NCBI RefSeq assembly: GCF_000007005.1
Contig: NC_002754.1
DNA: 64,000 nucleotides
Source of the DNA: Saccharolobus solfataricus P2
GTDB lineage: Archaea; Thermoproteota; Thermoprotei_A; Sulfolobales; Sulfolobaceae
Reading direction: 5' to 3' (one strand)
The notes beneath the pieces are model-generated. The model saw nothing but the letters and a program-made list of their open reading frames with translations, did not search any database and was not told the origin of the DNA. Below are positions 1,160-20,308 of the stretch, in pieces. The position numbers and the translations under genes were made by a program. Within the stretch, counting starts at the first letter, position 1, and each line of letters starts with the position of its first letter.

Positions 1160-1330
1160 ATGAGCATATTCGGGGTTTAGGCTTCATGGGATTTCATGAT
1201 ATTTAATATTAATCCTCAGCCCTTGGGCTTCACCAAAGTCACGGACGTTCATCCCTCTCCGCCCCATTAGCGGGATAACCCCAACCCACACCCGCGCTAT
1301 TTCACGGATGTGAGGAAAACCGCACATCTT
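1160..1330 (-). ncRNA. Putative omega-RNA overlapping the tnpB 3' end and element right end (boundaries approximate)
   Basis: Inferred from general TnpB biology and GC-rich sequence downstream of the RuvC-III codons; not directly demonstrated. Confidence 0.35.
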
Positions 1331-2452
1331 GAGATAAATATTCAGTGAAGCATTCAATTGCCTATCTAACTTGAACCCGCACCTCTCACACTCAAAGGTC
1401 TTACCAACCTTTCGGGATACAAACCCACATCTGGGGCAAGACCTCGAGGTGAGGTACGGGTTAACCTCCTTCACGAAGGAGCCGTAAAGCGGAGCCTTGT
1501 ACTTCAACACTCTGTGTATACTCCTCCAAACAGTCCTAGAAATCTTCCTCGAAAGAGACTCATTAGCATCTACAAACATACCCTCTTTATCAAGCTTTTC
1601 CACAGCGAAAAACGTCATGGGGTACAAGTCCAACAACGCGTTTACAAACTTGTGAACGAAGTCCAGAACGCGATTCCTCTCCCTATGCGAATACTTCCTC
1701 ATCAACTCTCTCCCCCTCTTCGTGTGCTTTGATGCAAATGATTGCACCTTAGCCCTCTTCACCTCCATAGAGTACTTAAGGGAGTACAACTGCTTTAGGG
1801 AGATTGTAACGAATTTCTCACCATCATAAGCATCTAGAGTATAAAGGTTGGAGTCAATAGCTAGAAAGTTCACTGGTGTTACCCACGGTAACTTGTAACG
1901 AAATGGTAGGTAAACCTTCTCCTCCTTAATTATAGGTTCGCCAAGTTCCAACTCCCTAACCCTTCTTGAGAACCATGACTTACTCCACGGGAAGGTGATG
2001 TACTCATGAGGTCTTACCGTTATTCTAACGCTTTCCCCCACAACCTTCCTCAGAGTCGTCTTTATCCTAACGTAAGCCTTCTTTACCCTTGGTTTTTCAA
2101 TCGAAGCTCTCCCCTTTATGGCCCTTTTCCTCCACGACTTCAAGATCGAGAATGCGTCATTAATTGCCTTATCAACGTAGTGTGACGCGAGGTGGTTGAT
2201 CTTCTCCAACTCTTCCCTAAGTGGTTTGTACACTTCCTTCTTCTTCGGTAGTGTTATCTTGTAATTACCGTTCTTTTTTCTTACTTGTATTTTCGTTAAA
2301 CTCCACAAGTAGTCAATTGCTTTCTGTAGTAGTGTTCTGTATTCTTTAATTAACTCTTTGCTCTTCTCCCTCTCACTATTCTTGATAGAGTACGTGAAGT
2401 GCACGTATTCCTCTTCCGGTTCAAATTTTCCAATTCTTAAGTTCTTCAGCAC
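1184..2452 (-). CDS. tnpB: TnpB (IS200/IS605/IS607 RNA-guided RuvC protein)
   Basis: 422 aa; AIDSN (RuvC-I), VEKL (RuvC-II), CPRCG..CERCG Zn finger, DRQLNAS at RuvC-III. Confidence 0.92.
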   Translation of the reverse strand: MLKNLRIGKFEPEEEYVHFTYSIKNSEREKSKELIKEYRTLLQKAIDYLWSLTKIQVRKKNGNYKITLPKKKEVYKPLREELEKINHLASHYVDKAINDAFSILKSWRKRAIKGRASIEKPRVKKAYVRIKTTLRKVVGESVRITVRPHEYITFPWSKSWFSRRVRELELGEPIIKEEKVYLPFRYKLPWVTPVNFLAIDSNLYTLDAYDGEKFVTISLKQLYSLKYSMEVKRAKVQSFASKHTKRGRELMRKYSHRERNRVLDFVHKFVNALLDLYPMTFFAVEKLDKEGMFVDANESLSRKISRTVWRSIHRVLKYKAPLYGSFVKEVNPYLTSRSCPRCGFVSRKVGKTFECERCGFKLDRQLNASLNIYLKMCGFPHIREIARVWVGVIPLMGRRGMNVRDFGEAQGLRINIKYHEIP

Positions 2453-3008
2453 ATTTCTTCACCTTTTCGTATTCATGACTTCTCATACCATACAGTTTCC
2501 CACTGAATGAGACTAGTGCTGACATTAGGTCTTCAACTAGTTCTTCCTCTTTGTCCTCTTGGTTTAGTACTACTATTTCACAGTTGTGTGCTTTGCACAC
2601 TTCCTCCAGGATTTCGAAGCCGACTCTAACAAGTCTGTCTGGGTAAGCAACAACTACGCGTGATACTTCGTTGTTCAGTATCATTCTTAACAACTTCAAG
2701 AACCCCTTTCTCTTCATGTTTAACCCGGAACCTATGTCAGTAATTACGAGGTCGTACTCCTTGACTTGTTCCTCTAGATACTTCACTTGGTTTACTAGTT
2801 CGTCTTTTTGTGTGGAAGATGATACTCTAGCGTAAAGTATTACTTTTCTTTTTCTAATAATTCCCATTAGCCTCTCTACGTCCTCTTCTCCGAATCTTTG
2901 TTTTCCACTCTGTAGTATAACTGGTTTTATGTATCCTTTCTTAACGTATTCTCTAAGTGTTGCATAGGATATTCCTAGTCTTTGGCATGCTTCCTTAGGT
3001 CTTAGCAT
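2421..3008 (-). CDS. tnpA: IS607 TnpA serine recombinase/transposase
   Basis: MerR-like N-terminal HTH, YARVSS catalytic motif, DIGSG, DRLxR. Confidence 0.93.
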   Translation of the reverse strand: MLRPKEACQRLGISYATLREYVKKGYIKPVILQSGKQRFGEEDVERLMGIIRKRKVILYARVSSSTQKDELVNQVKYLEEQVKEYDLVITDIGSGLNMKRKGFLKLLRMILNNEVSRVVVAYPDRLVRVGFEILEEVCKAHNCEIVVLNQEDKEEELVEDLMSALVSFSGKLYGMRSHEYEKVKKCAEELKNWKI

Positions 3009-4963: not shown

Positions 4964-5650
4964 TTAGCTATCCTTTTTCTCCTCTTCTTGCTTAGAGACA
5001 TTGTTAATTACATTGTAGAATTTTAGGTCGTCAATATATCGTTTAATTATTCTCGACTCAGCCGATCTTAAATGATATGTGAATGTGGATTTACTTATAT
5101 TTATCAATTTAGATATTTTATCAGACTTGATCCTCCTAGGAAAATCAAAATATCCATTTTTATAAGCTAAAATTAAAGTTTTGAGTTCATATGGAGTAAG
5201 TTCATCCTCAGTTATATCTAATTCATGAAAACTAATAAACTCTACATTCCCTTTTGACTTAAGCTTCTCTCTCAGTTCATTAACGTAACTTTCATATAAT
5301 AAAACTCGCCAATATTCCTTTCCATCATACTTAAATCCATCTAAGATTATTCCATCTACGGAGTTTATATTATCCATCACACTATTTTTGTATCTCTTTC
5401 TGAAATCAAACAGTATTTTCTTATTATCTGTTGTAAGTGAAACTAATGAGTACCCTATGAAACTATTATTTCTTTTTATCTTATTTATTAACTCCTTGTA
5501 TTTTTTATCCACAACAATTAGAGACCTAATAAAGTTCCTCTCAGTGTCTACGGAAAACCTTAAAGTTTTCACAACGTATTTACCAACTAGATTAGTCCAA
5601 CAATTCTCATGTTCTACGGAAAACGTAATCTCCAATAACCTATCACTCAT
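4964..5650 (-). CDS. HTH-10 (bacterio-opsin activator-like) transcriptional regulator
   Basis: C-terminal LT..E...L..AY..GYFDFPRRI....SKSTF.YHLR.AE signature. Confidence 0.88.
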   Translation of the reverse strand: MSDRLLEITFSVEHENCWTNLVGKYVVKTLRFSVDTERNFIRSLIVVDKKYKELINKIKRNNSFIGYSLVSLTTDNKKILFDFRKRYKNSVMDNINSVDGIILDGFKYDGKEYWRVLLYESYVNELREKLKSKGNVEFISFHELDITEDELTPYELKTLILAYKNGYFDFPRRIKSDKISKLINISKSTFTYHLRSAESRIIKRYIDDLKFYNVINNVSKQEEEKKDS

Positions 5651-7850: not shown

Positions 7851-7882
7851 GTGGTATTTTTAAGTGAGATAGGAAAACTTGA

Positions 7883-7890
7883 AACAAGTT
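7883..7890 (+). promoter_or_regulatory. AACAAGTT box upstream of ADC-like paralogue 2
   Basis: TTGAAACAAGTTTAA, TATA-like CTTATTTA at 7901; 49 bp to ATG 7932. Confidence 0.7.
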
Positions 7891-7931
7891 TAATGGAGTG
7901 CTTATTTAGTAGGTTAAAAGTAAAAGTACCT

Positions 7932-8744
7932 ATGACAAAAAATAACTCCGATTTCACTTTACCCCCAACGAATAGTGGTAAATCCCAAATTGTATTCCAA
8001 CCACCATGGTATTATGGTGTAACCTACATTGGGGCTCATGTAAAGTTCACTAAGGAATCTGCAGAAAAGGTAATTCCGGGATTCCTATCAACTGACGGTG
8101 AAGGTTGGGTTTACATTGCCGAATTTATTTCTACCTCAGAAGACAATTGGGACTATATGTATCAAGACCCAGATTTAGTACAGTATATGGAGGGAGCTAT
8201 TGGGTTAAAGGTCAATTTTGAAGGAAAGAATTACTTATATTTCCCATTCATGTGGGTTGATAAAGATTGGGCATTGGTAAGGGGTTGGTTAGATGGCTAT
8301 CCAAAGAAAATAGCTAAAATAGCCATGACTAAATTACATCCATTACTTCCCAAGTACAATAAACCAGAAAGTGGACTTAGATTAGGAGGATATGTTGTAA
8401 GGGGAGGAGGTGTAATGTTTAGAATGCAAGTTGAATTAGAGGGGAGGACTGATTCACTGCCCCTTAAGAGCTTCGGACCATTCTTAAATATAAGGAGGTT
8501 CCCAAGTAGAGGTGAGGGTGAAGTTGATCTTTACGAAATAGTAAGTAGAGTTAGGGATGAGAGCAAGTACGGAGAAATATGGAAGGGAAAAGCTAATGTG
8601 GAGCTAGGCGGATACGTTAACGATGAAGTTAGCTTGCTTGAAGTTGAGAGAACGATTGGAGGTTACTACTATACCTTATACTTCAAAGTAACTACCACTC
8701 AACTAATAAGCAAGAAAATCGAAGAAACCATCTCTCTAAAATAA
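7932..8744 (+). CDS. Acetoacetate decarboxylase-like family protein, paralogue 2 (start revised from 7851)
   Basis: [19 protein letters not shown] aligns with the N-terminus of paralogue 1; [10 protein letters not shown] motif. Confidence 0.85.
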
Positions 8745-8805: not shown

Positions 8806-9813
8806 TTAGATTTTTGCGCCTAATTTCTGTCTGACTATCTCTTTTAATTCGTCACTAACTCTATTTGCAGGTATAGGGCTACCATGCCAAAATGCCTCTT
8901 TAACATGTCCCCAATAATATAACCATCTGTTTTCATCCTCCTTAGTATCCCACACTATTGGCTCCCAATCCGGTACAACATTAAGGTAACCACCATGCAA
9001 TAATTCAATTACGTTACCGCCAGGCTCCTTTACATAAAGTGAGTGGCTATCAGTTATACCGTGCCTTAAAGGACCCCCTACAATTTCTAAACCGTAATCA
9101 GTGTAAAAATCAGCAGCCTTAAGTATGTCGTCCGCATAATCCACATTAAACGTAACATGGTTTAGTCTGGCTGGAACTCCGGAAGGATCTAGGCTAACCG
9201 CCAAGTCATGTGCTGTACCATTAACTGCCATCCAATATGCAATCCTTTTGTCACCTTCTTTTAATATTTCATTTACTTTAAATGTGAGCCTCTTCAGTAA
9301 CTCTACGGTCTTAGCAAGAGATTCATCATTATAGGCGAAGATAAATATATGGGACAAATCCTTAGCTTGAACTCCTTTAGTAGGTTTTTTCATAGGTCTA
9401 GCCTTATATCCCGATCTAAGTTCACCTGAAGCTCTCCATATCTTCATTTCCCATACCAGTTTACCAATTTGACCACTTGGTAAGATAAATTTATACCCTT
9501 TCCCTACACCCATATCTGGCTCTCCTTCATCCCACCCTAATCCTAATCCATTAGAGTTTACTATATTTATAGAATCAATTAGATCTTTTTCACTATAAGT
9601 TCTCCATACAATCTCCTTGACTCCAGCGGTATCAGATTCAGTAACCTTTAAACTATATGCGTACCAATCTTCCCACCCTCTTAGGTATACCGATCTATCC
9701 TTCCTTCCAACTTCATGTAATCCCAAAATGTCCTTGAAAAACCATAATGTATCATCAATTTTAGGCGTTAGAATTTCTACGCTAGCTAATTGGGAAAGTA
9801 ACTTATTTACCAT
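8806..9813 (-). CDS. xylE: Catechol 2,3-dioxygenase (extradiol, VOC fold)
   Basis: VYLRGWED, SHIF, HDLAV, NHVTF, RHGIT..S.Y..EPGGNVIE metal-ligand pattern. Confidence 0.92.
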   Translation of the reverse strand: MVNKLLSQLASVEILTPKIDDTLWFFKDILGLHEVGRKDRSVYLRGWEDWYAYSLKVTESDTAGVKEIVWRTYSEKDLIDSINIVNSNGLGLGWDEGEPDMGVGKGYKFILPSGQIGKLVWEMKIWRASGELRSGYKARPMKKPTKGVQAKDLSHIFIFAYNDESLAKTVELLKRLTFKVNEILKEGDKRIAYWMAVNGTAHDLAVSLDPSGVPARLNHVTFNVDYADDILKAADFYTDYGLEIVGGPLRHGITDSHSLYVKEPGGNVIELLHGGYLNVVPDWEPIVWDTKEDENRWLYYWGHVKEAFWHGSPIPANRVSDELKEIVRQKLGAKI

Positions 9814-9916: not shown

Positions 9917-10336
9917 ATGAACATATTAAATAAGTTAGGCATATCAGATGAATTAGCGGATATGTTAATAAATGAGGCAGTAAGGAAGGCTAAAGAGTTA
10001 GGAGTAAACGTTTCAATAGCAATAGTAGATGAAGGAGGAGAATTGAAGGCTTTTAAGAGGATGGACGGTGCACCAATCTTGACCATACAAATAGCCATAG
10101 ATAAATCGTGGACTGCTGTAAGTTTTGGTATACCGACCCATGAATGGTACAATATACTTAAAGACAACCCCTCGCTGGCAATGGGATTTCCTAAAATACC
10201 TAGGTTAATAATCTTTGGTGGAGGATTTCCTATAATCTATAAAGAGCAAGTAATAGGAGGAATAGGAGTATCTGGTGCGTCTGCAGAACAAGATATGGAA
10301 ATTGCCAAGAGTGCGCTTAAAAGATTGGAATCATAA
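9917..10336 (+). CDS. GlcG/HbpS (DUF336) haem-binding family protein
   Basis: IAIVDEGG...RMDGA, KSWTA, FGGG.PI...G.IGVSG. Confidence 0.88.
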   Translation: MNILNKLGISDELADMLINEAVRKAKELGVNVSIAIVDEGGELKAFKRMDGAPILTIQIAIDKSWTAVSFGIPTHEWYNILKDNPSLAMGFPKIPRLIIFGGGFPIIYKEQVIGGIGVSGASAEQDMEIAKSALKRLES

Positions 10337-10452
10337 TTTTGTAAAATATTAGATAAACTATTTGATGAAGATATAAAATGTACAAGAATGGTTTAAACTT
10401 TATCTTCCTTTTTTTAAATATAGACTTTTAAGTTCAAAATCTCCATGCATCA

Positions 10453-10460
10453 AACTTGTT
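10453..10460 (+). promoter_or_regulatory. AACTTGTT box upstream of the ferredoxin reductase gene
   Basis: TCAAACTTGTTAGA, CTTAATAT; 49 bp to ATG 10502. Confidence 0.75.
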
Positions 10461-10501
10461 AGATTAAGCTTAATATAGCTTTCAACGGTTCATGAATGTA
10501 G

Positions 10502-11716
<1,215 letters not shown>

Positions 11717-11744
11717 GTGGGATTTAAAGTTACTTCTTTTTTCG

Positions 11745-11752
11745 AACATGTT
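11745..11752 (+). promoter_or_regulatory. AACATGTT box upstream of hydroxylase alpha N-terminal half
   Basis: TCGAACATGTTTAA, TTTTTAAA; 47 bp to ATG 11792. Confidence 0.75.
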
Positions 11753-11791
11753 TAAGAATTATTTTTAAATGAGGATTATACATGTTTACTT

Positions 11792-12598
11792 ATGAAACCA
11801 GTTCCTGTAGAGCCTAGACTACCATCAAGAGACGAGTATTATGATTTAGCGAACAAGTTAGAGTGGACGCCAAAATATGTAAAAGAAGAAGAGCTATTTC
11901 CGGTAGATATGAGTGGAATACCGAATTTACCAATAGATGTATGGACTGAGCTATATGATGCCCCCTATAAGGTGACATATAGGGAGTATGTAAAGAATCA
12001 AAAGGAGAAGGATCAAAGACTTTTCTCTGTAAGAGAGGCTGGAGTAAGGGCAGAGCTAGTAAAGAAATTAGATAAGACTTATCATCAAGGTTCCTTCTGT
12101 TTCCACATAACTGCAGTTCCTATACCAGAATATACTGCGGCTATAGCTGAAGCAAGAATGGCAAGGTTTGGGAAAGCTGGTGAATGGAGAAACTTATCCA
12201 CATTTGGTTCTATGGATGAGGTAAGGCATGCGCAATTGCAAATCCTACTGTCTCATGATAATATACAAGCTAGTCCTAAGTTCGCTTTCGCGCATAAGAT
12301 GTTCTGGGTTGACGGCTGGTTACCAATAGCTGCTAGATCGTTCTTTGACGATACTATAACTGGGACTAATGCAATAGAATTTGCTTTATTAACGACCTTT
12401 GCATTTGAGACTGGATTTACTAATTTACAATTTGTAGCATATGCCGCTATGGCAAATAAAACTAATGACTTCGTGTTCTCCTCAGCAACTCAAAGTATAC
12501 AAACTGATGAGGCTAGGCATGCGCAAATAGGGCACCCAGTTCTAAAGGCTTTTGTTGACGTAACAAAGGTAAATGAAGAGATGGAAAAGAAAATTTAA
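11792..12598 (+). CDS. tmoA: Diiron aromatic monooxygenase hydroxylase alpha subunit, N-terminal half
   Basis: Carries the full ligand set: PEY, DEVRH, FETGFTN, DEARH. Confidence 0.85.
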   Translation: MKPVPVEPRLPSRDEYYDLANKLEWTPKYVKEEELFPVDMSGIPNLPIDVWTELYDAPYKVTYREYVKNQKEKDQRLFSVREAGVRAELVKKLDKTYHQGSFCFHITAVPIPEYTAAIAEARMARFGKAGEWRNLSTFGSMDEVRHAQLQILLSHDNIQASPKFAFAHKMFWVDGWLPIAARSFFDDTITGTNAIEFALLTTFAFETGFTNLQFVAYAAMANKTNDFVFSSATQSIQTDEARHAQIGHPVLKAFVDVTKVNEEMEKKI

Positions 12599-12620
12599 TT
12601 TGTTTTTTTAAAATTTTTCC
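12599..12620 (+). terminator. T-rich archaeal terminator after the alpha N-half
   Basis: TTTGTTTTTTTAAAATTTTTCC directly after the stop codon. Confidence 0.6.
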
Positions 12621-12684
12621 CTATTTATACTTTACTCTTCTTAGTAAGAATTCAAAATCTATAAACTGATAAACACATCTATCA

Positions 12685-12692
12685 AACTTGTT
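12685..12692 (+). promoter_or_regulatory. AACTTGTT box and promoter for the alpha C-half operon
   Basis: TCAAACTTGTTAGA identical to the 14-mer at the reductase promoter; CTTAAAAA; 47 bp to ATG 12732. Confidence 0.75.
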
Positions 12693-12731
12693 AGAACAAT
12701 TCTTAAAAAGTATAAAAAAGATTATACGACG

Positions 12732-13664
12732 ATGAGTAGAGAAGGAAGTTTAGGCCAAACTAAAGGAGAAGTCAAGCAAGTATTATCAAACATTTCGGAG
12801 GGATTAATGAAAAATTATAGAAATACTGTTGAATTTGCTGCTAGGATGAGAGAAAAAGGCCCGGCATATAAAGAGGCAGGAGAATATTTGGTAGCGAAAG
12901 GATTCTGGCTCTCCGTTAGGCTAATAGGAGCCTTAACCGGAGTTTCAATGGATTACCTCACTCCTCTAGACGCTAGAATAATGTCATACAAGGAGTTTAT
13001 GACAGAATGGGTAGGTGCGCAGTTAAAGAGATTATTAGAAGATTATGGAATAAGATTACCTTGGTATTGGAAATGGTTTGAGTTAGAGTTAGACCATTGG
13101 CATCATGACTTTATTATAGGATTATATACGTGGAGAAGGACTCTAAATGTTTCATTTAGAGGTCCTACGCCTGATGAGAGAAAATGGTTAAACGAGAAAT
13201 ATCCACATTGGGAGATGTTTTTCGGTAGAGTTTGGGACTTGTATATAAAGAAGATTATTGATGGCCAAATACCGTTACCATTAACTGCAGTACATTTATG
13301 TGCGGTTTGTCAAGTACCGATACAAGCTCCAGCTAATGGAAAGTACTTGAGGATCTACTTAAAAGAGTATAAGGGAAAAATGTATACGTTTGATAGTCCC
13401 GCTTGCTTATGGATATTTGAACAAGAGCCAGAAAGATATGCTGGGAGAAGGACTTACACACAAAGAGTTCTTGAGGGTATGATACAGTTTACTGAAGAGG
13501 CATACAAGGATCCGAAGAGGCTACTAGATGAGGTGATATGGAATATGGGACAAACAGAGGAAGGGGAAGCTGGTCTAGACCCTACTGACGGTGCATATGC
13601 ATTATTATATAGAGAGAAAGATCCAGATTTCTTTAATAGAATAAAGAAGTATACGGAGGCGTAA
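12732..13664 (+). CDS. tmoA: Diiron aromatic monooxygenase hydroxylase alpha subunit, C-terminal half
   Basis: GFWLSVRL...TGVSMDYLTPL...SYKEFM.EWV, WLNEKYP.W, YHS-like C..CQVP...F.S..C.WIFEQEPERY. Confidence 0.85.
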   Translation: MSREGSLGQTKGEVKQVLSNISEGLMKNYRNTVEFAARMREKGPAYKEAGEYLVAKGFWLSVRLIGALTGVSMDYLTPLDARIMSYKEFMTEWVGAQLKRLLEDYGIRLPWYWKWFELELDHWHHDFIIGLYTWRRTLNVSFRGPTPDERKWLNEKYPHWEMFFGRVWDLYIKKIIDGQIPLPLTAVHLCAVCQVPIQAPANGKYLRIYLKEYKGKMYTFDSPACLWIFEQEPERYAGRRTYTQRVLEGMIQFTEEAYKDPKRLLDEVIWNMGQTEEGEAGLDPTDGAYALLYREKDPDFFNRIKKYTEA

Positions 13665-13669
13665 AACAA

Positions 13670-14104
13670 ATGAGTATAGAAGCGGTACCCATAGTGTTTG
13701 TTCCAGAAGAAGGTACAGTATGGTTACCAGCTGTGCTTCCAACAAACATTGCAGTAAAAGAAGCTGTTGAAATGTTAAAGAGTTTAACAGTCAATGTGTT
13801 AGTATGGGAAAAGAAAGGGAAAGAGTTAAGGTTAGTAAATTACTTTACTGGTCAAGTCTTAGACCCTAATGCCAAAGTTAGAGACGTAATAAAGCCATAT
13901 GACGTTTTCTGGTTAATCTGGTGGCCTCCTAGAGAAGAGTTCTGGAAGCCAGAAAATCAGAATGATGAAATATTTAGGATTATAAAGGAGACCGAAGATG
14001 CAGTAAAGTCAGCCCCAAGATCTCCTTCAGTACTATTTGCAGATGAGATTGAGAAATATAGTATCGTTAGAAGATTGGAAAGGGAGGGTAAACTAAGAGC
14101 GTGA
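13670..14104 (+). CDS. tmoB: Probable hydroxylase gamma subunit (TmoB-like) with C-terminal extension
   Basis: Position in operon; N-terminal ~85 aa fits the TmoB ubiquitin-like pattern (TVNVLV...ELRLVN..TGQVLDP...V.D.IKPYDV). Confidence 0.55.
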   Translation: MSIEAVPIVFVPEEGTVWLPAVLPTNIAVKEAVEMLKSLTVNVLVWEKKGKELRLVNYFTGQVLDPNAKVRDVIKPYDVFWLIWWPPREEFWKPENQNDEIFRIIKETEDAVKSAPRSPSVLFADEIEKYSIVRRLEREGKLRA

Positions 14105-14108
14105 GATT

Positions 14109-14513
14109 ATGAATTACCCTGGAGAATTTCATAAATTACTAACTCTAGACGACATTTATGAAGGAGAGGCTAAGCTAGTAGAGGTTAATAGATATGAAAT
14201 TCTAGTAGTAAATATAAAGGGAGAGATTAAGGCATATTATGCTAGATGTGCCCATGCATTAGGTTTAATAGAATCAAACTCTTTCGATGGTGAGGAGAAA
14301 ATAATATGCCCAGTACATCTATGGGAGTATAACGCGAGGACAGGCGAAAGTATAAATCCAGTTGGTAGTTCTCTCTTTCCTTTAGATGTGAAGGTTGAAG
14401 GTAGTGATATTTTTGTTAAAGTTCCATCTGTTCCCATATCCGAATTCAAGGTTAAATGGTTTGGTATGTATAGGCAAAGGGGTGTGATAAATGAGTTTGG
14501 AGTTAACTCTTGA
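14109..14513 (+). CDS. tmoC: Rieske [2Fe-2S] ferredoxin
   Basis: RCAHA and CPVH.WEY Rieske motifs. Confidence 0.9.
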   Translation: MNYPGEFHKLLTLDDIYEGEAKLVEVNRYEILVVNIKGEIKAYYARCAHALGLIESNSFDGEEKIICPVHLWEYNARTGESINPVGSSLFPLDVKVEGSDIFVKVPSVPISEFKVKWFGMYRQRGVINEFGVNS

Positions 14514-14838
14514 AACAATTTTAGATAAATATCAAATAATGGATTTAAGTAAATTACCACAAAATATGGTAGGGCCAGTGCTCATGAAAGACGAGTTCAG
14601 CTATGCTGTAGTTGAGGCTTTAGCGCGCGATAATCCAAATACTTTCAAAGGAGTTCTTGATAGGGGTTCTTACATAAGAGTAGTGGGTGAAAGGGAACTT
14701 ATCTTAAACAAGACTACGCTAGAGGAAGTGATAGGTATGGACGTTAGATTTCCTGGAGAGGTTGAGGTAAGGATGAGCGCATTTGCAGGAAAGATAATTG
14801 TTAGAGGGGATTATATAAAATGGCATTTAGACTTGTGA
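14491..14838 (+). CDS. tmoD: Monooxygenase effector/coupling protein (MmoB/DmpM/TmoD family)
   Basis: VGPVL, DNP...DRGSYIRV, E..MSAFAGKI. Confidence 0.88.
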   Translation: MSLELTLETILDKYQIMDLSKLPQNMVGPVLMKDEFSYAVVEALARDNPNTFKGVLDRGSYIRVVGERELILNKTTLEEVIGMDVRFPGEVEVRMSAFAGKIIVRGDYIKWHLDL

Positions 14839-14849
14839 GGTGAAAGGAT

Positions 14850-15980
14850 ATGACTAGATTAGAGGATTTGGAATGGTATAAAAGGTATAAACAAATGTTC
14901 GGAGCATTCAAAAGCGGTCCAGAAGGGGATCCGTTTTTCAGAGATTATGAGTATAGGGGATACAAGAAAGTTTGGTCAACGTGGCCAATGTTGGAGAAAA
15001 AGTTAGGAAGAAAAAAACCATCAGAATACCAAGTAGTTACTTATGCATTATCATACTGGGCCGATCCAAGATCCCCTACTTATATCTACGATAAAGGGCC
15101 ATTTGAACTAGGGACAGAACACATAACCCAAAAATGGTATAAACACTTTAGAGACAACTCACCGTTCATTAAACCATTATTCGAAAGAGGTGAATGGCAT
15201 GATTATGAAGACCCATACAAATTGACATATTGGACTTATAACTCCATGGCGGACGATAATGAAACTTTCTTAGATAAGATTTACGAGGAGATTGTAAATA
15301 CTAAATATGATTGGAACCTAAATGAAGAGGTACTGGAATTATACAAGAACGTTTATGACCCATTAAGATACGTATTCCATATTATGCAAATGGAGTCAAT
15401 GTATCTAGCTACTATGGCTCCTACAAGTTCTATAGCTAACGTATTTATTTTCATGGGAATGGACCATTTAAGGAGAGTCCAAAGAATTTCACAAAGGGTA
15501 AAGATGCTCGATATTGTATATCCAAGTCTAGGATTTGGAAAGGAAACAAGGAAGGTATTTGAGGAGAGTCCAATATTTCAGCCAACAAGAGAAGTATTGG
15601 AGAAAATGTTAGTTACGTATGATGTAGGAGAAGCCTTAGTAGCGTTTAACTTAGCAGTCAAATTCGTATTAGATGAACTGATACTCCAACATCTAACTCA
15701 ACCATTCAGTAAGTTAGGAGACGAGATGATAAAGCACATTCACTTATCGTTCTATAACGATACGTTAAGACATAGACATCAAGCTCAAGAGCTGTTCAAA
15801 TACGCATTCAGTAAGGAGCCAAGTTTAAAGGATGTTATTAAACCTTGGGTGAAAGATTGGCAAGAGATGGGATTTAAGGCTACAGAAGGGTTTAGAGATG
15901 TGCTTAAAGGAGAATATGATAATGCTATAAGGCAGATTAGGAAGGCTCATAGTGAATATCTTGGAGGAATAGGACTATGA
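14850..15980 (+). CDS. tmoE: Hydroxylase beta subunit
   Basis: RKKPSEYQVVT, W....DPYKLTYWTY, MDHLRRVQR, D.LRH. Confidence 0.85.
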   Translation: MTRLEDLEWYKRYKQMFGAFKSGPEGDPFFRDYEYRGYKKVWSTWPMLEKKLGRKKPSEYQVVTYALSYWADPRSPTYIYDKGPFELGTEHITQKWYKHFRDNSPFIKPLFERGEWHDYEDPYKLTYWTYNSMADDNETFLDKIYEEIVNTKYDWNLNEEVLELYKNVYDPLRYVFHIMQMESMYLATMAPTSSIANVFIFMGMDHLRRVQRISQRVKMLDIVYPSLGFGKETRKVFEESPIFQPTREVLEKMLVTYDVGEALVAFNLAVKFVLDELILQHLTQPFSKLGDEMIKHIHLSFYNDTLRHRHQAQELFKYAFSKEPSLKDVIKPWVKDWQEMGFKATEGFRDVLKGEYDNAIRQIRKAHSEYLGGIGL

Positions 15981-16438
15981 AGGAGAAGGTTGTAGAAATT
16001 TTGAGGCAAATTTACGATCCAGAAATTCCAATAAATATATATGACTTAGGACTAGTAAGAGAGATAAGAATTGAAGGCAAAAGAATTTTTGTTAGATTGA
16101 TTTTCACTGCAAATAAGGGATGTACGCTGGCAGATCTTGTAGCAGTTCAAGTTAAGTATAAACTAATGAAGGTATTTCCAGACTATAACGTGGAGGTCAA
16201 GAGTGATTTCAATGAAGAATGGAATATAGGCTATGCAACAGAAACGGGCAGGCTGATGTTAGAGGAAATATATGGAAAGGATGCAGTGGAGGTATTAGTT
16301 AATAAGACCAAAATAGAGGAATTAGTATCAACAAATAAAGTCAAGTTAGAGAATTTCGATCCACGTGAATATATGAGAAAAGCAGTGGAGGAGAGATATA
16401 AAAAATTTAGAGAATGGTATGACAAACACAAAATATAG
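15977..16438 (+). CDS. DUF59 / PaaD / SufT-like metal-sulfur cluster assembly protein
   Basis: LRQIYDPEIPINIYDLGLV, T...C motif. Confidence 0.85.
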   Translation: MKEKVVEILRQIYDPEIPINIYDLGLVREIRIEGKRIFVRLIFTANKGCTLADLVAVQVKYKLMKVFPDYNVEVKSDFNEEWNIGYATETGRLMLEEIYGKDAVEVLVNKTKIEELVSTNKVKLENFDPREYMRKAVEERYKKFREWYDKHKI

Positions 16439-17395
16439 TCTTTTTCTTAATAGGCACTACATGCTCCGCCTCTAACAAACCTACTGGGACAACGAGTCTA
16501 GCACATCACCCACATCAACATCTTGAACGTTAACGTCCTTCCCCCTAGGTGCCCTAAAACTCTTCTTAACATCGCCCTTGTAAACACCATCCTTTATAAC
16601 GTGATAACAAATACAAGCAAGCTTCCCACCAAGAGCACAAGTTTAGTAGCACTCTTCCACTTGGAGACAAGCCTATCGTAATACTCCTTAAAACGCTCAG
16701 ACTTCCTAGCAACCCTAGCAACCAAGAAAAAAGCCCTACGCAAATACTTATTACCCATACCAGAGTGAGACTCGCTCTCACCACTCTGCTTAGTTCTGGG
16801 AGCAAAACCAGCATAAACCCTAGCCTTAGAACTGGAAAAACGAGAAACATCACCGAACTCAGCGTAAATGGTTGCAGCACTAATCAAACCAACTCCCGGC
16901 TCAACTCGACCACAGGCTGAGGAATCTTAGAAATTATCATGTCCTCAACTTCCTTAACCATAGCCTCCAAGCTCTTCAGTAAGTCTACCAGCTGCTTCAA
17001 AGCTAGCTTCTCAGCATCATTCAAACTTCTCCCTAACTTCTCCTTCAACTCGTCCCTTTCCTCCTTGCTCAACCCTTCTCCCCTACTTAACTTCTCCAGC
17101 AACGCCATTCCCCTCTTATCAAAGGGCTCTATCTTGTATCCCGCCATTTCTAGAAACTTCCTTATCTCGTTCTTTACTTGCGTTATCTTCCTCATCAAAC
17201 TCTCCCTATACCTCGTTAACTCCCTCAATTCCCTTATTTCCCCGGTCGGTATGTATGACCCCTTAACTGCTCCCAGGATGAAGGCTTTTGCCAGTCTTTG
17301 CGCGTCTAGCTTGTCGGTCTTCTTTCCGAATACTTCCTTCAAGTGTAAGGGATTTATTACTGTTACCTTATATCCCTTTTCTGTTAGTTCTTCGT
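16434..17395 (-). mobile_element. 5'-truncated, frameshifted IS110-family copy (left arm of 962-bp inverted repeat)
   Basis: Reverse complement of 18478-19439; KTDKLDA, GNKYLRRAFF motifs. Confidence 0.88.
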
Positions 17396-18443
17396 TAGTG
17401 TTTCCGAAAAGTTTATAGATTAGTATTACCAGATTGAACTATGCAAGATTTGGTTCAAGCTTATAAGGAAGAGAAGAACGCGAGAATTAAGGAGAGGATT
17501 CTTGCAGTGAAGCTGCACGTAGTTGATGGTAAATCGGAGAAAGAAGTTTCGAAAATGCTTAACAAGGGCTATTCCACGATAAAATTGTGGATTGGCAAGT
17601 ACAAGAAAGAAGGTCTTGATGGACTAAAGGACAAGCCCAGATCAGGAAGACCCAGAAAAGTAGAAGAGGAAAAGATAAAACAAATTCTGGAAGATAAGCC
17701 CCAAAAATACGGAATACAACAAGAATATTGGACAATGAAAACACTCAAGATAGCACTACAAGAACAAGGAATAGAATACAAGAAATCCAGACTATACGAA
17801 CTAGTCCACGAACTAGGATACAACCTAGTAAAACCCAGACCTACCAACATCCAAGCAGAAAAGGACAAGTGGGAAGATTTTAAAAAAATAAAGAAATTGG
17901 AAAGAAAGGCACTGTTCTTTCTAGACGAGTGTAGGACAGTAATTAGCACGTCAATTAAGAAGGTTCTAGCTAAGGTTGGCAGTAAGCCCGTAATGCGCGT
18001 CAATATAGGTTTTTCCTCAATCTATGTTATTCTAGCTATAAACGCTTGGACCGGCGAAGTAGTGGTTTCTCTTGCTAAAAGGCCTAACTCTGAATCCGTT
18101 AAGTATTTCTTGAGGTACTTTAAGAGGCGTGTGGGTAGTGGTAGGGTTTACATGGTCATGGATAATTACTCTCCTCACAAGACTAAGGGTACGCTTGAGG
18201 TTTGTCGCAGGAAGGGTATTCATCCCGTGTTTACTCCTCCTTACTCGCCTGAGCTTAATATGGCTGAGGCGGTCTTCAAGTCCCTCAAGAACTACATGAG
18301 CAATAAAATATTCTATACGATAGAAGACGTTAAAAACTGTATTAAACAGTTCTTTGAAGAAAATAAGTATAGATTTAATCTTAATGCAATAACATACCTA
18401 GGATTAGATAAAATTGAAGTCTAAGAACTTTCCGGAAATACTA
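17396..18443 (+). mobile_element. ISC1048 (IS630 family), 1048 bp including both TA
   Basis: TIRs TAGTGTTTCCGAAAAGTT / AACTTTCCGGAAATACTA, TA at both ends, DDE ORF. Confidence 0.88.
17441..18424 (+). CDS. IS630-family transposase (intact, 327 aa)
   Basis: HTH, FLDEC, VMDNY..H, PPYSPELNMAE. Confidence 0.92.
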   Translation: MQDLVQAYKEEKNARIKERILAVKLHVVDGKSEKEVSKMLNKGYSTIKLWIGKYKKEGLDGLKDKPRSGRPRKVEEEKIKQILEDKPQKYGIQQEYWTMKTLKIALQEQGIEYKKSRLYELVHELGYNLVKPRPTNIQAEKDKWEDFKKIKKLERKALFFLDECRTVISTSIKKVLAKVGSKPVMRVNIGFSSIYVILAINAWTGEVVVSLAKRPNSESVKYFLRYFKRRVGSGRVYMVMDNYSPHKTKGTLEVCRRKGIHPVFTPPYSPELNMAEAVFKSLKNYMSNKIFYTIEDVKNCIKQFFEENKYRFNLNAITYLGLDKIEV

Positions 18444-19439
18444 ATGGAGTCAACCGGACCGTACTTCTTCTACCTACACGAAGAACTAACAGAAAAGGGA
18501 TATAAGGTAACAGTAATAAATCCCTTACACTTGAAGGAAGTATTCGGAAAGAAGACCGACAAGCTAGACGCGCAAAGACTGGCAAAAGCCTTCATCCTGG
18601 GAGCAGTTAAGGGGTCATACATACCGACCGGGGAAATAAGGGAATTGAGGGAGTTAACGAGGTATAGGGAGAGTTTGATGAGGAAGATAACGCAAGTAAA
18701 GAACGAGATAAGGAAGTTTCTAGAAATGGCGGGATACAAGATAGAGCCCTTTGATAAGAGGGGAATGGCGTTGCTGGAGAAGTTAAGTAGGGGAGAAGGG
18801 TTGAGCAAGGAGGAAAGGGACGAGTTGAAGGAGAAGTTAGGGAGAAGTTTGAATGATGCTGAGAAGCTAGCTTTGAAGCAGCTGGTAGACTTACTGAAGA
18901 GCTTGGAGGCTATGGTTAAGGAAGTTGAGGACATGATAATTTCTAAGATTCCTCAGCCTGTGGTCGAGTTGAGCCGGGAGTTGGTTTGATTAGTGCTGCA
19001 ACCATTTACGCTGAGTTCGGTGATGTTTCTCGTTTTTCCAGTTCTAAGGCTAGGGTTTATGCTGGTTTTGCTCCCAGAACTAAGCAGAGTGGTGAGAGCG
19101 AGTCTCACTCTGGTATGGGTAATAAGTATTTGCGTAGGGCTTTTTTCTTGGTTGCTAGGGTTGCTAGGAAGTCTGAGCGTTTTAAGGAGTATTACGATAG
19201 GCTTGTCTCCAAGTGGAAGAGTGCTACTAAACTTGTGCTCTTGGTGGGAAGCTTGCTTGTATTTGTTATCACGTTATAAAGGATGGTGTTTACAAGGGCG
19301 ATGTTAAGAAGAGTTTTAGGGCACCTAGGGGGAAGGACGTTAACGTTCAAGATGTTGATGTGGGTGATGTGCTGGACTCGTTGTCCCAGTAGGTTTGTTA
19401 GAGGCGGAGCATGTAGTGCCTATTAAGAAAAAGACTATA
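18444..19439 (+). mobile_element. 5'-truncated, frameshifted IS110-family copy (right arm)
   Basis: MESTGPY (IS110 catalytic E), same lesion at SRELV/MISAAT as the left arm. Confidence 0.88.
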
Positions 19440-19701: not shown

Positions 19702-19926
19702 ATGTCAGACGTAATAAGCGTAAGAGTGAAGAAAGAGCTAAAGAAGAAGGCAGAGGAGTTAGGAATTAACGTTAGGGAAGTTGTAGAAAAAGCTTTAGAG
19801 GAAGCCATAAGGGAGAAGGAGAAGGAAGAGCTTAAGGATATGACTATGAAAATTAAGGAACTAATGAGGGACGTAAGTGAATATGATTGGGTAAGTACTG
19901 TTAGGGAGAGTAGGGATGAAAGATAA
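19702..19926 (+). CDS. vapB: VapB-type RHH antitoxin
   Basis: MSDVISVRVKKELKKKAEELGINVREVV; overlaps the PIN gene. Confidence 0.85.
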   Translation: MSDVISVRVKKELKKKAEELGINVREVVEKALEEAIREKEKEELKDMTMKIKELMRDVSEYDWVSTVRESRDER

Positions 19927-20308
19927 GGAATTCTTGCTCGATGCCTCAGCTTTGTATTCACTTTTAGATTACGTGGATAAGGTAGATGTTAAGAAAATTC
20001 ATGTACTTACCCTAACTTTTTATGAGGTAGGTAATGTCATATGGAAGGAGTATTATATACATAAAAAGGTTAAAGATCCTATAACCCTTTCGAGGCTTTT
20101 CTATAAATTAATGCGAAAATTTAACGTAATAGAGGATTCGCCTCTTGAGGGGGTAATGAGAATTGCCATAGAAAGGGGTTTAACTTACTATAACGCATCT
20201 TATGCGTATGTTGCTGAATCTTTAGGGCTTATCCTAGTGTCTAACGATAAAGAGTTGATAAGAAAGGCTAACGCTATTTCGTTAAAGGATTTGATAAAAA
20301 GTATGTGA
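19916..20308 (+). CDS. vapC: VapC PIN-domain toxin
   Basis: LLDASAL, YEVGN, LTYYNASY, LVSND; the usual D of YDA is N here. Confidence 0.85.
   Translation: MKDKEFLLDASALYSLLDYVDKVDVKKIHVLTLTFYEVGNVIWKEYYIHKKVKDPITLSRLFYKLMRKFNVIEDSPLEGVMRIAIERGLTYYNASYAYVAESLGLILVSNDKELIRKANAISLKDLIKSM

Follow-up and report, generated by a model that had tools for sequence, protein, structure and literature searches.

Genes can be permanently divided in archaea, as those of the RNA polymerase subunits A'/A'' and B'/B'' are. We analyzed such a division in a diiron monooxygenase of the toluene/phenol hydroxylase family, whose alpha subunit is encoded by two open reading frames (ORFs), here called the N-half and the C-half, within a 64,000-nucleotide (nt) stretch of Saccharolobus solfataricus P2 DNA (contig NC_002754.1; "the window" denotes this whole stretch). 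Both the monooxygenase cluster and its two-ORF alpha subunit were reportedly described by Notomista et al. in 2003 (J Mol Evol 56:435) and by Izzo et al. in 2005 (Res Microbiol 156:677). The searchable literature yielded no account of a promoter in the gap between the halves, of an eight-box regulon, of a monocistronic N-half or of the variety of gene arrangements described below; Notomista 2003 and Izzo 2005 may already discuss promoters. The closest described enzymes are those with the one-piece alpha chains ToMO TouA (PDB 1T0Q) and T4MO TmoA (PDB 3DHG), with which the archaeal halves share the fold family and the six ligand positions.

The gene order and product names of the window match the SSO1218-SSO1234 region of S. 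solfataricus P2, and by gene order, product names and lengths the two halves are SSO1227 and SSO1228. These are annotated as the amino-end and carboxy-end fragments of TmoA, and both are phenol-induced (PMC7820114), which bears out the suspicion of an earlier reading made from the DNA letters alone (the sequence-only reading) that the split might already have been reported. With the split in the public annotation, the novelty is modest and limited to the gap promoter and the regulatory box shared across a phenol regulon. SSO1227 and SSO1228 are mentioned in the searchable literature in PMC7820114 only and SSO1219, the regulator discussed below, is not mentioned there. The current RefSeq name of the C-half is merely "YHS domain-containing protein," a label that conceals half a monooxygenase.

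The split alpha subunit

The two halves and the domain that gives the C-half its name are as follows (aa, amino acids).

11792-12598, + strand: N-half of alpha, four-helix-bundle diiron domain, 268 aa
12732-13664, + strand: C-half of alpha, 310 aa
13320-13448, + strand: YHS-type domain of the C-half, aa 197-239 (Pfam YHS, 64.8 bits)

The N-half matched Pfam Phenol_Hydrox (E = 7.5e-67, 225.7 bits) and aligned with residues 5-254 of ToMO alpha (E = 1e-68) and 5-257 of T4MO TmoA, while aa 47-254 of the C-half aligned with ToMO alpha 251-462 (E = 3e-47). The sequence-only reading had placed all diiron ligands in the N-half, and we located the six of them there (E113, E143/H146, E206, E240/H243) within the motifs PEY (aa 112), DEVRH (142), FETG (205) and DEARH (239), which align with the ligand motifs of ToMO alpha. 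The N-half has the ferritin-like four-helix bundle with two E...EXXH ligand motifs, and the C-half has the C-terminal helical region and YHS-type domain homologous to TouA/TmoA 251-462. Instead of a single alpha polypeptide of ~500 aa, the locus holds two ORFs in different reading frames, separated by a gap of exactly 133 bp that is 22% GC and carries stops in all three frames. Together the halves come to 578 aa (268 + 310) against 498-500 aa for one-piece alpha chains, in agreement with the excess noted earlier.

We mapped the cut point on a hidden Markov model (HMM) built from four full-length alpha relatives. In every lineage examined, the N-half covers positions 4-249 of this model and the C-half positions 248/249-466. 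Since the two ranges abut, the cut is clean, with no alpha sequence missing or duplicated. At the cut, a 9-aa tail is added to the N-half and a 45-aa head to the C-half; codons 1-45 of the latter (12732-12866, + strand) have no counterpart in one-piece alphas on the HMM, so that the "about 50" unexpected residues of the earlier reading become 45. The head is present in all eight aligned C-half homologues with L18, E34, A36 and G43 invariant, and Y46 is invariant just after it. An origin of the gap in a partial duplication of alpha was rejected, as the halves do not overlap on the full-length HMM.

Three cysteines in or near the YHS-type domain (C190, C193 and C225; 13299-13406) are invariant in all eight archaeal C-halves, and C225 has no counterpart at the aligned ToMO alpha position. 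From their conservation, they are possible candidates for an extra metal site.

Conservation and origin of the split

Both halves of the window recur unchanged on dozens of public contigs, and near-identical halves occur in S. islandicus, S. shibatae, Acidianus brierleyi and several Sulfolobus isolates. The split point is kept with intact ORFs in many species from at least four named genera (Saccharolobus, Metallosphaera, Acidianus and Pyrobaculum) as well as in unclassified Sulfolobus strains and unnamed lineages. C-half homologues are 304-312 aa long with identities down to 51%, and all have the N-terminal head. Comparison with other Sulfolobales and Thermoproteales clusters gave the same split in all members of the archaeal clade that we examined. 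When 1.84 billion representative proteins were scanned, genuinely short N-halves were found only in the Sulfolobales cluster and a Pyrobaculum-like cluster, and the next-best matches to the N-half were chains of 493-505 aa at 45-48% identity. One 268-aa bacterial-type match (P0017) was considered as a second split and rejected, being a contig-end fragment that extends past the split point.

In a maximum-likelihood tree of the C-terminal region, seven split forms made up one clade (100/100) nested among one-piece relatives, which implies a single fission. Relative to Saccharolobus sp. E5-1-F, the ratio of nonsynonymous to synonymous substitution rates (dN/dS) was lowest in the 45-aa head (0.026), followed by the C-half (0.04) and the N-half (0.08). 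The head gave proportions of nonsynonymous and synonymous differences of pN = 0.27 and pS = 0.91 relative to Metallosphaera; at larger distances pN was far under pS in every segment, with the head evolving about three times faster than the core. Both halves and the 45-aa head are under purifying selection. Taken together, the single origin, the conservation, the low dN/dS, and the phenol induction and conserved box and TATA described below support a fixed gene fission and not a lesion, as the sequence-only reading had proposed.

A deviant N-half was seen in Pyrobaculum sp. metagenome-assembled genome (MAG) DRTY-8 (L002; L-numbers denote related loci). At ~5741 it has a 5-nt deletion relative to L009, with the other 718 of 718 bases identical. 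The deletion hits the FETG ligand codon exactly and shifts the frame, and the frameshifted translation is database entry P0009. Either the assembly is wrong at this point or the strain has an inactivated N-half.

Gene arrangements across lineages

The related loci differ in how the halves are placed.

Tandem halves, 118-217 bp gap: Saccharolobus-like contigs (the window, L005, L010-L014)
Tandem halves, 711 bp featureless spacer: Metallosphaera javensis (strain J1, L001)
Tandem halves, 74 bp gap: Pyrobaculum lineage
Tandem halves, 23 bp gap containing GGTG: L008
Divergent halves on opposite strands: Sulfolobus sp. A20 and relatives
Gene for a 360-aa Zn-alcohol dehydrogenase (ADH) between the halves: L016-L018 and L007

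In addition, L006 has no N-half within 2 kb upstream of its C-half. With at least six arrangements, the halves behave as autonomous genes across archaeal lineages, and the divergent, ADH-interrupted and N-half-less loci make co-transcription of the C-half with the N-half impossible in several of them. In L016-L018 and L007 the ADH gene overlaps the N-half stop and is followed by a T run, ~130 bp of A-T-rich DNA and then the C-half.

The interposed gene lies at 1786-2868 in L017, 929-2017 in L016 and 2-829 in L007, in a lineage of 50-55% GC, and an ATGA overlap makes it appear translationally coupled to the N-half. The Metallosphaera spacer (L001 5290-6000) contains no repeats and no ORF recognisable by Pfam, and is unlike the Saccharolobus gap except in its last ~50 bp, where the box and TATA lie.

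Putative promoters and the shared box

The elements assigned to three putative promoters are listed below (BRE, transcription factor B recognition element).

10450-10463, + strand: reductase promoter box TCAAACTTGTTAGA, 52 bp before ATG 10502
11742-11755, + strand: N-half promoter box TCGAACATGTTTAA, 50 bp before the ATG
11762-11769, + strand: N-half TATA TTTTTAAA
12682-12695, + strand: C-half/operon promoter box TCAAACTTGTTAGA, 50 bp before the ATG
12703-12718, + strand: C-half TATA/BRE region TTAAAAAGTATAAAAA, centred ~26 nt before the ATG

The gap between the halves had been said to carry a box and TATA of its own, the box being identical to that of the reductase promoter. Both elements were recovered (12682-12695 and 12703-12718), and TCAAACTTGTTAGA occurs in exactly two copies in the 64 kb, at 10450 and 12682. 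Likeness between the gap and the reductase promoter is confined to 15 bp, too little for the gap to have come from a duplication of that promoter, an origin that we rejected. The C-half TATA TTAAAAAG lies at 12703-12710, 29 nt before the ATG. By the sequence-level test for crenarchaeal leaderless promoters, the region before the C-half qualifies, with a TATA ~26 nt upstream and no Shine-Dalgarno sequence, and the C-half mRNA is predicted to be leaderless.

A scan of the window that allowed up to two mismatches to TCAAACNNGTTTGA with the AAC..GTT core intact gave eight sites (3402, 5835, 6995, 7880, 9866, 10450, 11742 and 12682). All of them precede the start codon of a phenol meta-pathway cluster gene, at a distance of 49-52 bp. 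These genes encode an aldehyde dehydrogenase, an alcohol dehydrogenase, two decarboxylase-like proteins, an HbpS-like protein, the reductase, the N-half and the C-half; the box of the HbpS-like gene is common to a divergent dioxygenase gene. The box is absent from the other 50 kb of the window. It is a 14-bp palindrome of the TCAAAC-NN-GTTTGA type with the core AAC-WW-GTT, and in all eight cases an A-T-rich, TATA-like element (TTAAAA type) follows 6-8 nt downstream, ~29-32 nt before the ATG. This spacing of box, TATA and ATG is the geometry of a crenarchaeal promoter with a leaderless mRNA. The constant register across the cluster promoters that the sequence-only reading had noticed thus holds, and its "47-bp spacing" is better given as 49-52 bp from box start to ATG. 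The degenerate pattern TVRAACWWGTTWDA has eight matches where chance would give 0.24, and all of them fall in the 3.4-12.7 kb interval; it was derived from its own sites, so that the independent evidence is the clustering and the fixed distance to start codons. A scan for bacterial-type promoters and terminators gave counts equal to those of shuffled controls, as expected for an archaeon.

The register is kept in other genera. In Metallosphaera, TTAAACATGTTTGA lies 50 bp before the N-half start and TCAAACCTGTTAGA 50 bp before the C-half start, the latter at the end of the unrelated 711-bp spacer. In L006, TCAAACATGTTCGA lies at -51 of a C-half that has no N-half upstream, and TTAAAA follows the C-half box by 7 nt in the window, Metallosphaera and L006 alike. 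Box and TTAAAA hold this register before the C-half in L010-L013 too, again behind unrelated upstream DNA. Overall, the C-half box is kept at -44 to -51 in L005, L010, L012, L013, L001 and L006 and is degenerate in L014. From these features and the transcript levels given below, the C-half very probably has a separate inducible promoter, and the eight boxes look like a so far undescribed operator of a phenol regulon.

Transcript levels and probable operon structure

The N-half was said to end with a T-rich terminator. Its stop is followed by T7 and T5 runs, a tract that ranks as one of the two longest of its kind in the interval 3-16.7 kb.

12603-12618, + strand: putative poly-T terminator of the N-half (T7 12603-12609, T5 12614-12618)

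The N-half stop has T runs behind it in L005, L001 and L002/L009 too, as has the ADH gene of L017. S. solfataricus P2 grows on phenol, with the cluster genes induced 10- to 384-fold and the mRNAs of both halves among the most strongly phenol-induced transcripts (PMC7820114). We used the RNA-seq values of strain P2 from that work (PMC7820114 Supplementary Table 3), given below as mean reads per kilobase per million (RPKM) on glucose and on phenol.

Reductase: glucose 59, phenol 574
N-half: glucose 369, phenol 26848
C-half: glucose 9.15, phenol 3515
SSO1229 (gamma): glucose 17.6, phenol 2868
SSO1230 (Rieske): glucose 21.0, phenol 1727
SSO1231 (effector): glucose 37.8, phenol 673
SSO1233 (beta): glucose 25.3, phenol 1483
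SSO1234 (Fe-S assembly): glucose 21.2, phenol 948

From the reductase to the N-half, RPKM rises 47-fold on phenol, a step that requires a promoter before the N-half. From the N-half to the C-half it drops 40-fold on glucose and 7.6-fold on phenol, which implies that the poly-T tract terminates most transcripts and fits the terminator claimed earlier. The two halves are not induced alike: phenol raised the C-half 384-fold and the N-half 73-fold, and the C/N ratio moved from 0.023-0.027 in the glucose replicates to 0.11-0.19 in the phenol replicates, a 5- to 8-fold shift. If termination efficiency is assumed constant, read-through would supply ~665 RPKM on phenol, ~19% of C-half mRNA. We infer that about four-fifths of the C-half mRNA on phenol would come from its own inducible promoter, assuming equal mRNA stability.

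The mRNAs of the N-half and C-half stand at 40:1 on glucose and 7.6:1 on phenol, though a 1:1 need for the proteins is expected. Basal output of the N-half promoter is high (369 RPKM).

Downstream of the C-half, five genes follow closely; they are listed here after the reductase gene.

10502-11716, + strand: ferredoxin-NAD(P) reductase, Pyr_redox_2 type (Pfam), a separate transcription unit upstream of the N-half
13670-14104, + strand: gamma, 144 aa
14109-14513, + strand: Rieske ferredoxin (Pfam)
14491-14838, + strand: effector, MmoB/DmpM (Pfam)
14850-15980, + strand: beta, second Phenol_Hydrox protein (Pfam)
15977-16438, + strand: FeS_assembly_P protein (Pfam)

Beta, gamma, Rieske ferredoxin, effector and reductase are thus all encoded alongside alpha. 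The window gamma had no Pfam match, and its L017 homologue was a weak TmoB (24.2 bits, cut-off 25); no NCBIfam model matched the N-half, the C-half, gamma or the HTH_10 regulator. Intergenic distances from the C-half to the FeS_assembly_P gene are 5, 4, -23, 11 and -4 bp. A GGAGG/GAGGTG-type Shine-Dalgarno motif is clear before four of the five genes downstream of the C-half, the Rieske gene of the window having just TGAG where relatives have TGAGG. The motifs of these genes usually lie 6-10 nt before the start, in the window as in Metallosphaera and L006, and no Shine-Dalgarno match precedes the ATG of the N-half or of the C-half. The RPKM values of the six genes from the C-half on are similar and fall gently, as expected for one operon. 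Given the tight packing and the Shine-Dalgarno motifs of the five downstream genes, the gap promoter most likely heads the operon alphaC-gamma-Rieske-effector-beta-FeS-assembly. The promoter dedicated to the C-half alone, as first proposed, therefore stands in its box and TATA, which are conserved in other genera, and gives way in its extent to a six-gene operon. The N-half is probably a monocistronic gene.

A candidate regulator

Archaeal activators act upstream of BRE/TATA. The ARA box of Sulfolobus, AACATGTT, lies upstream of BRE/TATA and needs the activator XylR (Saci_2116); when a single base at its end is changed, almost no XylR-dependent activity is left (PMC7264815). Three of our eight boxes contain the exact ARA core AACATGTT, and the other five, including the C-half box, contain the one-mismatch core AACTTGTT or AACAAGTT. 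Like the ARA box in position and core, the phenol box most likely recruits a dimeric activator. The cluster itself encodes a candidate.

4964-5650, - strand: HTH_10 (bacterio-opsin-activator type) regulator, Pfam HTH_10 E = 3.7e-21, SSO1219 by gene order

Its mRNA rises 12-fold on phenol (PMC7820114). An orthologue at 60% identity is present in the Metallosphaera cluster, which has the same box, and the A20 cluster, where no box was found, has an HTH_10 protein of only 31% identity. The cluster HTH_10 protein is the best candidate for binding the box as a dimer and activating the eight promoters.

Proposed explanation and its alternatives

We propose that the toluene/phenol hydroxylase alpha gene underwent one ancient fission just past the fourth ligand helix, at about position 249. 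Nothing would have been deleted, and ~300 bp would have been gained as the 9-aa tail and stop, the spacer, and the 45-aa head, which would since have become conserved coding sequence. In Saccharolobus and Metallosphaera the N-half would be a monocistronic, leaderless gene served by one box and TATA, with most transcription stopped at its poly-T tract; a second box and TATA would serve a six-gene operon that opens with the C-half, also leaderless. The box just upstream of BRE/TATA would recruit a dimeric activator, best the HTH_10 regulator of the cluster. The hydroxylase would assemble from alphaN, alphaC, beta and gamma, with the 45-aa head and 9-aa tail aiding docking. We regard this whole reading (ancient fission, autonomous halves, a second boxed promoter for the C-half operon and a four-chain hydroxylase) as likely. 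On a more speculative note, the phenol cluster of Saccharolobus and Metallosphaera might be one regulon of at least eight promoters, all driven by HTH_10 through the box, and the fission might have allowed the ligand half to come under a promoter of its own that is leakier and far stronger (8- to 40-fold more mRNA than the other parts of the enzyme get). The diiron half would then be produced in surplus or earlier than its partners, perhaps so that it can be loaded with metal at 80 degrees C, and would dock to the C-half via the head; we offer this tentatively and think it may well be wrong.

The second promoter would be superfluous if the C-half and the genes after it were transcribed by read-through from the N-half promoter, with the box modulating read-through or left as a relic. 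A C-half RPKM that always stays under that of the N-half (13% on phenol) would agree with this, as would the distant lineage L008, whose 23-bp gap with a Shine-Dalgarno motif points to co-transcription somewhere in the clade. Read-through does not account for a box and TATA register kept 50 bp before the C-half behind the unrelated Metallosphaera spacer and in L006, where there is no N-half to read through from, nor for a C-half that lacks a Shine-Dalgarno sequence, unlike every clearly internal gene. It also sits poorly with 384-fold against 73-fold induction and the shifting C/N ratio, and the divergent and ADH-interrupted loci show that the C-half can be expressed alone; we judge it unlikely. 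An operator for a repressor, or a XylR site, in place of a phenol-specific activator site is somewhat easier to entertain, though still improbable: the exact ARA core in three of eight sites would suit XylR, and HTH_10 is a candidate binder of the box only. The box, however, lies upstream of BRE/TATA, the position of archaeal activators, of which the ARA box is the closest example. The remaining five sites have variant cores, and XylR-dependent activity is nearly lost on single-base changes at the ARA box end (PMC7264815). The phenol cluster, to which the boxes are restricted, itself encodes a phenol-induced regulator.

That alpha is a two-fragment pseudogene, with phenol oxidized by another enzyme, is very unlikely. 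The genome annotation does call the ORFs "fragments," and one Pyrobaculum MAG has the 5-nt deletion in its N-half, but a lesion is hard to reconcile with a split kept with intact ORFs in at least four named genera, with dN/dS of 0.03-0.08 and all ligands present, and with two mRNAs strongly induced by phenol in a phenol-growing strain. Because Crenarchaeota splice some mRNAs, we also considered that a bulge-helix-bulge intron, recoding or protein splicing might rejoin the halves into a one-piece alpha, and found no support. The stops of the gap in all frames and the different frames of the halves oppose it, as do gaps that range from 23 to ~1200 bp and the A20 halves on opposite strands. The gap folds no better than shuffled controls (z = -0.64) and has no Rfam match above threshold, so that an RNA element or intron there was rejected; no intein motifs are present, and the added residues show the conservation of normal coding sequence. 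Rejoining is therefore exceedingly improbable.

Several points weigh against the fission with two boxed promoters and a four-chain enzyme that we prefer. The gap promoter and the N-half terminator are inferred from RPKM steps together with sequence and comparison; scatter among the phenol replicates is wide; and since C-half RPKM is below that of the N-half in both conditions, abundance alone is compatible with read-through. The SSO numbers that tie the expression values to window ORFs were assigned by order and product name only. The C-half box was not found in Sulfolobus sp. A20 and Pyrobaculum, which makes the operator lineage-specific, and the pairing of regulator and box covers three lineages only. 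No XylR homologue from S. acidocaldarius was among the 20 best HTH_10 relatives (at least 53% identity, all cluster-linked Sulfolobales). An AlphaFold2 model of the C-half from eight sequences had a predicted local distance difference test score (pLDDT) of 46 with the head helical at low confidence, too poor to assign the head's role, and the literature gave neither protein-level evidence for the N-half or C-half nor a purified enzyme.

Surroundings of the cluster

Other features of the cluster and its borders are given here for orientation.

8806-9813, - strand: catechol 2,3-dioxygenase-type gene
9917-10336, + strand: HbpS-like protein

Upstream of 8.8 kb lie genes for an aldehyde dehydrogenase, the HTH_10 regulator, a Zn-alcohol dehydrogenase and two acetoacetate-decarboxylase-like proteins. 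The longest ORF of the second decarboxylase-like gene (7851-8744) begins at GTG 7851 and contains the box at 7880; its L005 orthologue is 270 aa long, and the true start is probably ATG 7932, 52 bp past the box.

Mobile elements adjoin the cluster on both sides. A TnpB-like gene (OrfB_IS605 plus a Cas12f-like TNB domain; 1184-2452, - strand) and a serine-recombinase gene (2421-3008, - strand) constitute an IS607-type element at 1184-3008. On the other side, a 962-bp perfect inverted repeat has arms at 16434-17395 and 18478-19439, each holding parts of an IS110-family transposase, which flank a DDE_3 (IS630-like) transposase gene (17441-18424). The start of the left arm lies inside the final codons of the Fe-S assembly gene, with which the monooxygenase operon closes. 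At 19702-20308, a small CcdA/RHH-like antitoxin ORF overlaps a PIN-domain ORF, a VapBC-type toxin-antitoxin pair.

Comparison with known systems

Both archaeal halves are 40-48% identical to one-piece toluene monooxygenase alphas, and the partner set of beta, small gamma, Rieske ferredoxin and effector is common to ToMO and T4MO. The archaeal chain differs in being cut after ~249, in its 9 + 45 extra residues and longer C-terminus, and in a gamma of 144 aa. The reductase of the archaeal cluster is a Pyr_redox_2 ferredoxin reductase by Pfam, and that of T4MO is of another type.

The ARA-box promoters resemble those of the phenol cluster in having an AAC-WW-GTT core just upstream of the TATA and in that inducible catabolic promoters share one box. 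At 14 bp and with TC...GA flanks, the phenol-cluster palindrome is longer, phenol takes the place of a pentose as inducer, and the cluster encodes its own candidate regulator, HTH_10. An ARA-like operator common to eight phenol promoters points to a phenol-responsive activator and possibly offers a new inducible promoter set for Sulfolobales genetics.

As with RNA polymerase A'/A'' and B'/B'', a bacterial-type polypeptide is present as two conserved genes, whose products assemble in the polymerase. The alpha halves differ from those splits in that they are not always adjacent or co-oriented, in their probably separate regulated promoters and in their very different mRNA levels. The halves have changed their relative position several times, which makes the alpha gene a clear-cut natural example of a catalytic subunit with a fixed fission; here the C-half would head the hydroxylase operon and the ligand-bearing half would be transcribed separately and at a far higher level.

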